A stretch of DNA of 63,859 nt, filler included, from Ministeria vibrans ATCC 50519 (taxonomy: Eukaryota > Protista > Filasterea), in the NCBI GenBank assembly GCA_943704425.1. It is 9 parts of 9 records of this genome, joined end to end, with 100 filler letters (N's around TTAATTAATTAA, not from the genome) between each part and the next. Parts side by side here need not be neighbours in the genome. Positions count along the whole stretch, not along the records: positions 1 to 6,822 come from CALSCP010001361.1; 8 more parts are not named here. One strand, given 5' to 3'. The translations under genes were made by a program, and so were the position numbers. Each line of letters starts with the position of its first letter. Within the stretch, counting starts at the first letter, position 1. The notes under the pieces are model-generated. The model was not told the origin of the DNA. It searched no databases and saw only the letters and a list, made by a program, of their open reading frames with translations. Positions 1-6,822 of the stretch are shown here, piece by piece.

Positions 1-305
1 CGACTGGCTGACTTTCACGACTGCAGCCTCCGGTGAGGCAGACGAGTCCATTGTACGCTTCGGCATATGCAGCAGGGGCGGCGTGCGGCATCGTGACAAT
101 ATTAAGTGACTTATCGAATGGGACTCAAATCAGTTTCTTTTTTGTTGGAGTTGACGACCACTCAACCGAAGGAAGTGTGATCAGTTCGTGATCAACCGCC
201 ACTGCGCTTAAATAACGCTTTCCTCCACTCTTAACTCTTTATTCTTTAATCTTTTTTGCTTCTTTCTGTCGTGCTCTCCACCAAGCCGTTGCAACCCCTC
301 TCGGC

Positions 306-1709
306 ATGTCTGGGGCGATGATGCGCAAGTGCACTTTTCATCTCGGTAACACTCTGCTTGACTTTCACTTTCCGCTCAAACTTGTCGACGCACCTCCTTC
401 ATCTTTAGGCACGAACCCACAAGCGCTGTGTTCGGGGCATGTCGCGGTCCGTGGCGACGCATTGGACGTGCATGTTGCCGGCGGCCTGGACACCCTCTTG
501 GCCGGAACGACAAGGGTGTCGTCGACAGCGCACGACGCTCGCTTGCTTGTGGTCGACGCCACGCTCACGGTCAAGGTGACCGACCCGGCCGAGCATGGCC
601 ACGTGCACTCTGCCCTCCTCCCGAACGAGTGTCTGTGCGGCACAACGTCCACAACCAATCTGTGTGCCCCAAACCGCACCCGTTCGTCCCTTCTGGACTC
701 GTTGCAATCGGCTGATCTGGACCGTCACAAGACGTTTGAAGGCCGTTTTACCAACGACCCAGCGCAGGTGGGTTGGGGAGATTGAATTAAGAGGGAGGGG
801 GAGACACAATGTGAGAGATGGAGAGGAGGGAGAAAGAATCAAAGCGAGAGTGAGTGAGAGGAAGAAAGAAACACAGTGAGAGACAGACAGAGAGACAGAG
901 AGAGAGAGCCAGTTAAACTGGAAGTGTTGTTGTTTAGCCTGCTGTTGCTGTCCTCATCAAAGCGTTTGTGCGCGACTCGAGCGCCGATGACAAGGACCTG
1001 CGTGAAATTGCGCACGCCAAGTGGCTGTCGCGCGCAGGCTGTCTCCTACCCGTGCTGCACCACTTCTTCGACGACACCTTCCACTTTCTTGTCTTTGACA
1101 AGCCCCTCGGACCGACCCTTCGCGACTTCATAGGTTCCCACGCCATCCCGCTGAGCCTTGCGCAACAGACTGGGATTGCGCGCCAGCTTGTTGAGATTGT
1201 GAGCAAAATGCACGAGAAGCAGTACGCGCACAACGCGCTCACGCCCGATGTGATAGTGCTTGACGCGCCAGTGACGGACTCGAAGGCAGTCCCTCGCGTG
1301 TTTTTGCAGGACGTGCGCAAGGTGAAGCGGGCGGTGCCGCGCTCCAGCAACAGCACGAGCAAGTCAGGCGCGACAACCACTCGTGCCCGACAGGTCTGGC
1401 TCGCGCCGGGGCAGCTCCAGAATTCGACCTACTCGTCGCGCCTTGCACACGACCTCTTTTCGCTAGGGCTTCTCGTCTATGCGCTGGCCAGTGGCGGCAG
1501 GCACGCGTACGACAATGAGGACGGGTCAGCGGTGTCGGACGACGAGCGAATGCGCCGTCTGCTGCAGACAGCGGACAGTCCTCAAGCACTGAATGGCAGT
1601 ATCAAGCGCGACCTTTGCAACCCGCTCTTGGACGTGGCGCGGAGGCTGCTTCTACCTGCTGCCATTGACACGTAAGATGGGAGTGTGAGAGAGAGACAGA
1701 GAGACAAAC

Positions 1710-1746
<37 letters not shown>

Positions 1747-2813
1747 AAGACAGAGAGACAAACAGAGAGAGAGAGAGAGAATGACAGAATGACAGAATGA
1801 GAGTTTGAGTGAGAGAGAGAAAGTCTGATAGAGAACATGAGCGCTTAAGAGAGAGATATAGGAAAGAGAGAACTTGAGAGAGAAAGAGCTCGAGAAAGAA
1901 AGAGAGAGATGGAGAGGGAGAGGGAGTGAGAACTCGAGTGAGATTAAGAGGGCTGGCATGGAGCGTGGTCTCACACAGTGCGTGCTGTAGGAGGGAGATG
2001 GCGGGGAATCTTCTGAAGAAACACCCAGCGTTCTGGACGCAGGATCGGTTTGTGCAGTTTCTGATGTGTGACGGAGTGCAGAAGAATTTGCAGCAGGGCG
2101 TTTGCTTTGATCTGAAGGGGCCGGGTGCGAAGAAGACGGATCTTGCGGGGCTGCAGAGTGGGCCCTGTGCGGCTGCTGTGCCCCTGCTGTTTCCCACTGT
2201 GATGCGCGTGTCGCCGGATGAGGAGAAACGGGAGTTTGAGAATGAGACTCATTGGCAGTGTTGGCAGAATGTGTTGCACATTGTGGCGTGGGTTCCGGTT
2301 GTGGGTGGCAAGCCGCTCAACAAGAAACGCGATGAGCGATTTGACAATACCGATGGTGTGCCTCTCTGCCTCGTGCACGTGTTCACTGCACTGCGCAACA
2401 TGCTAGCGCACGCGGGGCACTGGATCAACTTTGTCACGCTCGTGCCCGACCATCCGCTCCCGTATCCCAACGCATGGGGCGCTACGCTGCAGTACCTGCG
2501 CCACGGCAGCCCAGGCGAGGCTGATGCGCGCAAGCATGCGGTGGTGGTGCCGGCCGCGGGATCACTGACGACCGGCGGGGAGGTGGTTCCCGTGGATTGT
2601 GCGACTGGCGATGCTCTGTATGACTTTGCCGAACTGACGCCGCGGGCGGAGAGGGCGTTGGGGTTTGTGGTGGACGCGCTGGGACGCAGTCCTGCGCGAC
2701 TGGACCATCTTCCTATGCGCCTGTGGATGTTGGCGCACCAGGTTCACGCGGACTGTGGCGTGCTCAACAATGTTAAGATTGCACAGGGCGACTGGGAGTC
2801 GTATTTTGTTTGA
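306..2813 (+). CDS. IRE1/RNase L-like pseudokinase-KEN(HEPN) ribonuclease; join(306..767,938..1671,1991..2813), ~672 aa
   Basis: GT-AG introns 768-937 (phase 0) and 1672-1990 (phase 2) join three ORFs in frame. Motifs resemble IRE1: FEGRF..AVLIK..REI, DLFSLGLLVYALASGGRHAY (IRE1 DIFSxGCVFYYVxSxGxHPF), LLKKHPAFWTQDRFVQFL (VLKHPFFWSxEKQLQFF), TALRNMLAH (RAMRNKKHH). HRD is replaced by HNA, DFG by DVR and APE by APG. Confidence 0.75.
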
Positions 2814-4858: not shown

Positions 4859-6822
4859 TCAAGTGTCGAACAAATGTGGACGTTCAATCTTGAACTGCCT
4901 CCAAGCCTGGAGCGCCTCCTGCTTCGCACGACCAGCCAGTCGGTTGTCTGGCTGACGCACACACAGGCACACGCTTGCCTTACACGCAAGCTGCAGCAAA
5001 CGCTTGGCTTCATCAAGATCATTGAGCTGCTCGCCAATGCGTCCTGCCAGCACACACATGCGGCATCCAATCGGAGTTTGCAAAAGAGGATGATCGACGA
5101 CTTCAAACGCCGGCAAAAGAGACCTGCCCTCCTTCAGAGAAGGCTTGCGCTTCCGAGGAAGAGGATGGGACATTGCTTGGTCGTACAGACAGTGGGCCAT
5201 CGCATAATTGCTCATCGCAATAGTCGGGTGGTCCAGGTTCCGCGCATGCACCTTCTCCTTGATGCGCAGTGACTCTCCATACCACTCCAGCGCCTTGTTG
5301 TACTCCCCCATCGCCTCATACACCCCCGCCATATTGCCCTTGGTCGTGGCAATCGATGGGTGGCCCAGGTTGCCCGCATGCACCTTCTCCTTGACGCGCA
5401 GTGACTCTCCATACCACTCCAGCGCCTTGTTGTACTCGCCCATCGCCGAGTACACCCCCGCCATGTTGCTCTTGATCGTGGCAATATCAGGATGGTCCAG
5501 GCTGCCCGCATGCACCTTCTCCTTGATGCGCAGTGCCTCTCCATACCACTTCAGCGCCTTGTTGTACTCGCCCATCGCCTGATACACCCCCGCCGTCGCA
5601 TGCTTGGTCGTGGCAATCGATGGGTGGTCCAGGTTCCCCGCATGCACCTTCTCCTCAATGCGCAGTGACTCTCCATACCACTCCAGCGCCTTGTCGTACT
5701 CGCCCATCGCCTCATACACCCCCGCCGTCGCATGCTTAGTCGCTGCAATCGATGGGTGGTCCAGATTGCCCGCATGCACCTTCTCGTAAATGCGCAGTGA
5801 CTCTCCATACCACTCCAGCGCCTTGTTGTACTCCCCCATCGCCTGATACACCCCCGCCGTCGCATGCTTGGTCGTGGCAATCGATGGGTGGTCCAGGTTC
5901 CCCGCATGCACCTTCTCCTCAATGCGCAGTGACTCTCCATACCACTCCAGCGCCTTGTCGTACTCCCCCATCGCCGAGTACACCCCCGCCGTCGCATGCT
6001 TGGTCGAGGCAATCGATGGGTGGTCCAGGTTCCCCGCATGCACCTTCTCCTCAATGCGCAGTGACTCTCTATACCACTCCAGCGCCTTGTTGTACTCGCC
6101 CATCGCCTGATACACCCCCGCCATATTGCCCTTGGTCGTGGCAATCGATGGGTGGCCCAGGTTGCCCGCATGCACCTTCTCCTTGATGCGCAGTGACTCT
6201 CCATACCACTCCAGCGCCTTGTTGTACTCGCCCATCGCCTGATACACCCCCGCCATATTGCCCTTGGTCGTGGCAATCGATGGGTGGCCCAGGTTGCCCG
6301 CATGCACCTTCTCCTTGACGCGCAGTGACTCTCCATACCACTCCAGCGCCTTGTTGTACTCGCCCATCGCCGAGTACACCCCCGCCATGTTGCTCTTGAT
6401 CGTGGCAATATCAGGATGGCCCAGGTTGCCCGCATGCACCTTCTCCTTGATGCGCAGTGACTCTCCATACCACTCCAGCGCCTTGTTGTACTCGCCCATC
6501 GCCGAGTACACCCCCGCCATGTTGCTCTTGATCGTGGCAATATCAGGATGGCCCAGGTTGCCCGCATGCACCTTCTCCTTGATGCGCAGTGACTCTCCAT
6601 ACCACTCCAGCGCCTTGTTGTACTCCCCCATCGCCTCATACACCCCCGCCGTCGCATGCTTGGTCGTGGCAATCGATGGGTGGTCCAGGTTGCCCGCATG
6701 CACCTTCTCGTCGATGCGCAGTGACTCTCCATACCACTCCAGCGCCTTGTCGTACTCGCCCATCGCCTCATACACCCCCGCCGTCGCATGCTTGGTCGCT
6801 GCAATCGATGGGTGGTCCAGAT
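4859..6822 (-). CDS. TPR-array protein (kinesin-light-chain/TPR_12-type 44-aa repeats), 5'-truncated by gap
   Basis: Open frame from the gap to the stop at 4859, with 12 full repeats of the form YxAMGEYxKALEWYGESLRIxEKVHAGNLxHPxIA.. and a unique helical C-terminus of about 100 aa. Confidence 0.9.
5225..6822. repeat. 132-bp coding tandem repeat, 12+ near-identical units
   Basis: Recurrent 'gtgactctccataccactccagcgccttgttgtactc' every 132 nt. Confidence 0.95.

Follow-up and report, generated by a model that had tools for sequence, protein, structure and literature searches.

The first 6822 nucleotides of a 63,859-nucleotide stretch of DNA from the filasterean Ministeria vibrans ATCC 50519 (assembly GCA_943704425.1; the whole stretch, nine contig parts joined by filler, is called the window) represent a complete contig (C1361) of a eukaryotic assembly (G000; 29.7 Mb in 2860 contigs). 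At 306–2813 this contig carries a gene for a soluble protein in which a degraded kinase-like domain is followed by a helical tail, and the balance tips slightly toward reading it as a cytosolic offshoot of the IRE1/RNase L "kinase-extension nuclease" kind that is restricted to its lineage and evolves fast. As originally predicted, three open reading frames (ORFs) on the + strand give 672 codons in a single frame once two GT-AG introns are spliced out (462 + 734 + 820 = 2016 nucleotides; intron phases 0 and 2), and the GC content at third codon positions is 0.68–0.73 in each of the three exons. Exactly one paralog is found in the genome (C2596:9504–10472, − strand; 35% identity over 158 residues). 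All database searches were made exon by exon, with each exon as its own query. The features of the gene are as follows.

306–767 (+): exon 1, 154 codons, donor CAG/GTGGGT; an N-terminal region of about 135 residues of no recognisable family, the last 20 or so residues of the exon appearing to be the start of the kinase N-lobe (degenerate Gly-loop).
768–937 (+): intron 1, 170 nucleotides, GT-AG, phase 0, purine-rich with GA-type tandem repeats.
938–1671 (+): exon 2, pseudokinase domain; acceptor TTTAG/CC, donor AC/GTAAGA.
959–961 (+): codon of the beta-3 Lys, kept in VLIKAF.
1229–1237 (+): HNA in place of HRD; HRD-L-K-P-x-N reads HNALTPDV, with the catalytic Asp, Lys and Asn all gone.
1310–1318 (+): DVR in place of DFG, the DFG Asp being retained.
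1403–1411 (+): APG in place of APE.
1490–1510 (+): SGGRHAY, the counterpart of GGGHPF in IRE1.
1672–1990 (+): intron 2, 319 nucleotides, GT-AG, phase 2, rich in GA repeats.
1991–2810 (+): exon 3, followed by the TGA stop at 2811–2813; acceptor TGTAG/GA; the kinase end and a 260-residue helical tail, a candidate divergent KEN/HEPN domain.
2022–2036 (+): H-P-A-F-W, within KHPAFW (2019–2036), a kinase–KEN junction of the IRE1/RNase L type; the next helix carries F23.
2394–2411 (+): R-N-M-L-A-H, a HEPN-type R-x4-H motif; R-N-M-A-E-H in the paralog and R-N-K-V-H-H in the IRE1 of this genome.
2412–2630 (+): insert of about 70 residues relative to the IRE1 KEN domain, holding the paralog-conserved block PLPYPxxWGxxLQYLxHGSP (2454–2513).
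2631–2810 (+): C-terminal 60 residues, placed by MAFFT and hhalign on the second half of the IRE1 KEN domain (ELPxxVxxxLG ... RFPxLL ... YY).

The strongest link to IRE1 lies at the junction between kinase and tail. KHPAFW starts ten codons into exon 3, after the last helix of the kinase, and the tail thus sits directly C-terminal to the kinase-like domain via HPxFW and the alpha-1 helix, the arrangement expected of the KEN family. In an unsupervised MAFFT alignment of the exon-3 paralogs with 48 full-length IRE1 proteins, H11, P12, F14, W15 and F23 (the Phe eight residues past the Trp) form columns that are invariant in all 48 IRE1s and both paralogs. BLASTP of the HPxFW and alpha-1 stretch against the IRE1 of the same genome gives an E value of 4e-4, and a hidden Markov model (HMM) built from the 48 IRE1 KEN domains scores exon 3 at 9.7 bits, compared with at most 0.6 bits in 300 shuffles. 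About ten other kinase ends sampled in the genome read HPW[VI], HPYF or HPF[LFIM], and none carries Trp at the +4 position of the HPxx end, a feature confined among the sampled kinases to IRE1, the present gene and its paralog. In this genome the HPxFW/alpha-1 junction is specific to the IRE1 type, as the original prediction had proposed, and its signal is statistically real.

Further along the tail, the predicted RNMLAH is found exactly where it had been placed and is conserved in the single paralog. R135, N136 and H140 of exon 3 form invariant columns with the R-N-K-x-H-H of IRE1, and the paralog version, IRNMAEH, resembles what we take to be IRNLGEH in RNase L. The motif lies in a helix predicted by AlphaFold, within a block conserved between the paralogs, and the chance occurrence of R-N-x3-H is estimated here at about 1–2% of 273-residue sequences. 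In a survey of HEPN domains, the motif is defined as R-x4-6-H with a polar residue after the R (PMC3710099), and R-N-x3-H has this form in both paralogs. Beyond the motif, MAFFT lays exon-3 residues 214–271 on the C-terminal half of KEN, with the last residue on a conserved Tyr (the paralog ends in GYY), and the C-terminal 60 residues are the only stretch that AlphaFold models at a predicted local distance difference test score (pLDDT) of 70–80. When the two-paralog profile is aligned to the 48 IRE1 KEN domains by hhalign, the probability is 72.5% and P is 3.3e-5, with a score of 37.8 compared with at most 20.6 in 40 column shuffles; after the post hoc removal of two inserts, the alignment runs end to end over KEN positions 1–141 with a probability of 89% and a P of 2e-6. 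These two putative inserts comprise about 40 residues (37–76) and about 70 residues (141–210). The final 130 residues or so, which had been described as a C-terminal extension, probably contain the second half of the domain, displaced by the insert of about 70 residues.

Several results weigh against this reading. All of the statistically solid signal falls within the first 25 or so residues of exon 3: the 9.7 bits of the IRE1-KEN HMM come entirely from residues 9–25 and drop to −1.4 bits without the first 15 residues, the hhalign P rises to 0.41 once these 15 residues (with HPxFW) are removed, and with the inserts removed post hoc and no junction, P is 0.0095 at a score of 20.9, the best of 30 shuffles reaching 21.1. 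Neither exon 3 nor the paralog matches PF06479 in Pfam at E ≤ 1, and a six-frame scan of the genome with PF06479 returns only the canonical IRE1. NCBIfam and PADLOC likewise gave nothing useful for exon 3 or its counterpart in the paralog. Sequence and two-paralog profile searches of the PDB return no IRE1 or RNase L for exon 3, the only match being an APS-reductase that was judged spurious. AlphaFold reaches a pLDDT of 34.6 with the two-sequence paralog alignment, which is unusable, and 48.4 with 48 IRE1 rows added, a run that is not an independent test; Foldseek and VIA-align searches with the AlphaFold models returned no IRE1, RNase L or KEN structure. Language-model look-alikes in the ESM Atlas were irrelevant, and leads to Abi_2 and Clampless/BTB fell below the reliability marks. 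The catalytic Tyr column, which is at least 90% conserved in IRE1 and which we take to be Y1043 in yeast, is occupied by F117 here and by Leu in the paralog, in a region where the alignment is uncertain, and in the MAFFT alignment the tail lacks the DVSDR and DLRKFR blocks seen in IRE1. For the kinase exon, the PDB sequence search ranks PknB, RAD53 and CK1 above IRE1. Finally, a scan of the genome with OAS1_C (PF10421) gives no match to the 2-5A synthetase of the OAS type that accompanies RNase L, such a miss not being proof of absence. Of the KEN/HEPN domain first proposed, the junction and the R-N-x3-H motif are borne out, and the domain as a whole finds no support from Pfam, from the HMM or hhalign without the junction, or from fold comparison. 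Taken together, descent of the tail from KEN is judged a little better than even, and activity as an RNase is possible and rather doubtful.

Among the alternatives, the one that survives best, which we nevertheless regard as unlikely, is that the pseudokinase is joined to an unrelated, lineage-specific helical C-terminal domain in which R-N-x3-H is coincidental, the protein acting as a scaffold paired with the neighbouring kinase and not as a nuclease; HPxFW and the next helix would then be the sole remnant of, or the sole likeness to, an IRE1-type end. This would explain why no method picks up KEN beyond the junction and why AlphaFold gives no KEN fold even with IRE1 rows, and IRE1 has nothing that corresponds to PLPYPxxWGxxLQYLxHGSP, the block most strongly conserved between the paralogs. 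HPxFW and RN are about 70–80 residues apart in IRE1 and RNase L, and the 120–140 residues found here also speak for an unrelated tail. This alternative accounts poorly, however, for the finding of HPxFW with Trp at +4 in no sampled kinase other than IRE1 and the two paralogs, for the colinearity with KEN of the junction, R-N-x3-H, ELxP...LG and the terminal Tyr, recovered by an unsupervised alignment, and for the position of the RN motif in a predicted helix, as in HEPN domains.

A second alternative, which we hold to be distinctly unlikely, accepts that the tail is derived from KEN and takes it to be catalytically dead, an RNA-binding or dimerising regulator that could, for instance, modulate canonical IRE1 or the partner kinase or act as a decoy for either. 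The Phe or Leu in the catalytic Tyr column, the loss of the basic columns of the IRE1 site (R115, R132 and K137) and the large inserts on either side of the catalytic helix all fit such a protein. There is precedent in the HEPN survey of Anantharaman et al., in which the motif is missing from about 5% of KEN domains and certain HEPN domains bind without catalysis (PMC3710099). Set against this, R, N and H are all kept in both paralogs at an overall identity of only about 30–35%, which points to selection on those residues.

The kinase-like nature of exon 2 is well supported, in agreement with the kinase fold that had been predicted. Pfam matches PK_Tyr_Ser-Thr (PF07714) at 27.0 bits (cut-off 23.1) and Pkinase (PF00069) at 30.8 bits, slightly below its cut-off of 31.7; a PDB sequence search returns 167 kinases at E ≤ 1, and the subdomains follow in the order of the protein kinase-like superfamily. 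In pairwise comparison, exon 2 matches the IRE1 of the same genome at 36.6 bits (E 2e-7) over a region that spans the GGRHAY/GGGHPF stretch, and IRE1 is its second-best match among 31 kinase loci tested in the genome. The degraded HRD, DFG and APE motifs and the kept VAIK Lys are all read in the exon translations as first described, and the active kinase of IRE1, with its HRD Asp, catalytic-loop Asn and DFG, is lacking in both genes, which read HNALTPDV and DVR here and HGLLTPDS and NFS in the paralog. Exon 2 thus encodes a catalytically dead pseudokinase that may still bind nucleotide. TPD follows the degraded HRD in both paralogs, which places the loss of kinase activity ahead of the duplication. 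The idea that the pseudokinase is a copy of the neighbouring head-to-head kinase was not supported.

A separate canonical IRE1, a check for which had been suggested, is present on contig C1199 (L006:3922–7127, − strand), with an ORF in which a TM-like (transmembrane-like) hydrophobic segment and HPFFW accompany an active kinase (HRD, DFG). The KEN domain of this IRE1 matches PF06479 at 91 bits on half a domain and is split by an intron of about 350 nucleotides made up of GA and ATA microsatellites. The best database matches of the protein are to Sphaeroforma, Creolimax and Ichthyophonus (38–44% identity, the highest being 43–44% to ichthyosporean IRE1s); by this one gene, the organism would be an unsampled opisthokont protist close to the ichthyosporeans. 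The search for OAS- or cGAS-like synthases that had likewise been suggested gave, besides the negative OAS1_C scan, only one borderline Mab-21/cGAS-like nucleotidyltransferase (C2136:8131–8361, locus L043), at 22.8 bits, or 24.4 bits with neighbouring matches, for a cut-off of 24.1.

The paralog shares the organisation of the gene and not its N-terminus. Its gene model, read from the DNA, has introns of 46–47 nucleotides starting GTAYR, one of which lies at the same position and phase (2) as intron 2 here, 10 codons before HPxFW. The encoded motifs are HGL-L-T-P-D, NFS, APE, GHHPFE, HPLFW, RNMAEH and the GYY end, preceded by an N-terminal region of about 270 residues without a transmembrane helix, and the locus lies on a 41-kilobase contig. 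Outside this genome, phmmer with exon 3 against 1.84 billion (1.84e9) protein representatives returned no true relatives, only a 170-residue, 99%-identical fragment and one spurious Sushi-repeat protein, which fits rapid evolution; a scan of metagenome contigs with the paralog alignment found nothing. A 1130-nucleotide contig (P0001) of JGI metagenome 3300045300 codes for the last 170 residues of the protein with a single K>E difference, which places the organism or a close strain in that sample.

Each of the two genes has a kinase gene as its head-to-head neighbour, as the following features indicate.

1–109 (+): contig-end overlap, 100% identical to C2452:1004–1112, which ties the contig to the upstream divergent active kinase gene.
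110–305 (+): 5′ flank or 5′ untranslated region, rich in pyrimidines close to the start codon; the reading frame is closed by a stop 30 codons ahead of ATG306.
L045:3–764 (−): kinase gene of C2452.
L005:7868–8815 (+): kinase gene of C2596, the contig of the paralog.

To the left of the overlap and on the opposite strand, an active-looking protein kinase begins on C2452 about 545 nucleotides from ATG306 (Pkinase 64.5 bits, HLDVKPQN). The paralog locus is arranged alike, with a head-to-head kinase gene, likewise active-looking, at a distance of about 560 nucleotides (Pkinase 74.7 bits, HYDVKPAN, DFG). Within the genome, each of the two partner kinases has the other as its sole significant match (32% identity, 77 bits). 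Since they are mutually closest and share the same head-to-head layout, the two-gene block of kinase and pseudokinase-tail gene was duplicated as a unit, which suggests that the head-to-head kinase belongs to the mechanism. Past position 1112, C2452 continues differently, which could be a branch of the assembly graph (haplotype difference or repeat).

The protein carries no signal peptide or transmembrane helix (maximum Kyte-Doolittle value over 19 residues, 1.28), and its N-terminal region is as unrecognisable as first reported: exon 1 matches no Pfam family at E ≤ 1, and so contains no ankyrin repeat, neither it nor its counterpart in the paralog gives anything useful in NCBIfam or PADLOC, and a PDB sequence search with the N-terminal regions of both paralogs found no match. 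No alignment is obtained between the two N-termini; an FHA-like domain suspected by eye in both received no support from Pfam or the PDB. Neither the signal peptide, luminal sensor and single transmembrane helix of IRE1, in this gene or its paralog, nor the N-terminal ankyrin repeats of RNase L that bind 2′,5′-oligoadenylate (2-5A) are present. As the contig starts only 305 nucleotides before ATG306, possible upstream exons had to be weighed. The same head-to-head kinase layout at both loci favours ATG306 as the genuine start codon and a cytosolic protein, an architecture in keeping with the lack of a transmembrane helix. A divergent ordinary IRE1, with signal-peptide, luminal and transmembrane exons lying upstream and off the 6822-nucleotide contig, is highly improbable: the short leader and a formally possible in-frame splice from nucleotide 32 to 286, traced by eye (frame 2 of nucleotides 2–32 open, GTGAGG donor at 33, AG at 284–285), would allow it, but the overlap with C2452 and the divergent kinase start leave no room for such exons, the paralog locus shows the same layout with no transmembrane or luminal exon, a canonical IRE1 is already present in the genome, and the kinase of this gene is dead.

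If the gene is an offshoot of the IRE1/RNase L kind, the tail would be a strongly remodelled KEN (HEPN) domain that kept the R-N-x3-H helix and the C-terminal half, gained two inserts, and lost the catalytic Tyr along with most of the basic residues conserved in IRE1. The pseudokinase may act as a nucleotide-binding dimerisation scaffold, as in RNase L, and two tails together would form a composite HEPN RNase site, while the N-terminal region may set the switch together with the active kinase, for example by phosphorylation. The active partner kinase and the gene would share a promoter region of about 550 nucleotides in head-to-head orientation. The complete scheme, a fast-evolving two-gene module of a unicellular relative of animals, duplicated as a unit, in which an active kinase switches on a head-to-head pseudokinase with a remodelled, active HEPN/KEN RNase, for example via the N-terminal region, is a speculative one that we consider improbable in full. 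Were it true, it would represent a kinase-gated version of the IRE1/RNase L principle, as opposed to the ligand-gated (2-5A) or lumen-gated forms.

A working KEN nuclease in the tail would mean that the IRE1/RNase L design, a dimeriser of kinase fold with a HEPN RNase, was put to use again outside vertebrates in a form that is cytosolic and evolves fast, and that it is wired to a dedicated partner kinase and not to 2-5A or endoplasmic reticulum stress. Fast evolution without detectable relatives is frequent in conflict or immune genes. A working KEN would also bear on the origin of RNase L-type effectors from kinase-plus-RNase ancestors, as outlined in a phylogenetic study (PMC10400998). If the tail is not a KEN domain, the locus still offers a clean case of a kinase/pseudokinase gene pair that was duplicated and carries an orphan domain, and either way the domain lies beyond the reach of current profile and structure-prediction tools.

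Some features of the surrounding DNA are of a more general kind. Both introns of the gene are about 80% purine with GA-type repeats, and long purine-rich, microsatellite-like GA/GAGACA tracts occur in them as well as in an intron of the canonical IRE1 (L006:4165–4517); as IRE1 shares them, GA-rich introns are a trait of the organism. The genome thus displays two intron styles, these long GA-rich tracts and the short GTAYR introns of the paralog. On the − strand, a large TPR_12/TPR_10 array (Pfam TPR_12, 431 bits, 11 stretches) occupies 4859–6822 and runs off the contig end. It is coded by a 132-nucleotide unit repeated in tandem about 12 times with 91% identity (5226–6820); the contig stops within the array, so this repeat is probably where the assembly broke.

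Among known systems, one of the closest to the gene is RNase L, which combines ankyrin repeats, a pseudokinase and a KEN domain (PF06479), and which likewise is soluble and has an inactive kinase-like domain with the beta-3 Lys, HPxFW and R-N-x3-H. The dimerisation-gated RNase activity of RNase L is the logic that would be expected, by analogy, of the present protein too. In contrast to RNase L, the gene has no ankyrin repeats, no Pfam KEN match and no catalytic Tyr, its tail is twice as long with two inserts, and no OAS1_C was found in the genome. With IRE1/ERN1, which occurs in all eukaryotes, it has in common the kinase fold, the HPxFW that comes after it, the invariant Phe of the alpha-1 helix, and R-N-x3-H, and the GxHPF-type stretch after helix F of IRE1 is clear in the paralog. 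It differs in having no signal peptide, luminal sensor or transmembrane segment, in its degraded HRD, DFG and APE motifs, and in having no intron in common with IRE1, and its candidate KEN domain is invisible to the HMM whereas that of the IRE1 in the same genome is recognised on half a domain.

Soluble proteins of this general kind have precedents. Two surveys describe ten clades of kinase-plus-RNase (PK+Ribonuc_2-5A) proteins across eukaryotes (PMC10400998), and KEN domains fused to kinases with ankyrin, CCCH, UBI or BRCT modules, solo KEN domains in Oikopleura and monocots, and lineage-specific expansions (PMC3710099). As kinase-plus-RNase proteins without ankyrin or luminal parts, in several clades, have already been described there, a soluble kinase-plus-KEN protein is not a new kind, and the "third architecture" claimed by the original prediction overstated its novelty (PMC10400998; PMC3710099). 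In the account given in the former source, a kinase-plus-RNase protein that already existed gained ankyrin repeats in jawed vertebrates and became RNase L, which makes the present gene at most an independent offshoot (PMC10400998). Like it, the members of the other clades place an RNase tail after a kinase-like domain, vary in their N-terminal module and have expanded in particular lineages (PMC10400998; PMC3710099). Those proteins, unlike the present one, are recognised by PF06479, and in the parts of the two papers that were read none is described as paired head-to-head with the gene of an active kinase (PMC10400998; PMC3710099). What is unusual here is the combination of extreme divergence, inserts, a dead kinase outside vertebrates, and a duplicated pairing with an active kinase gene.

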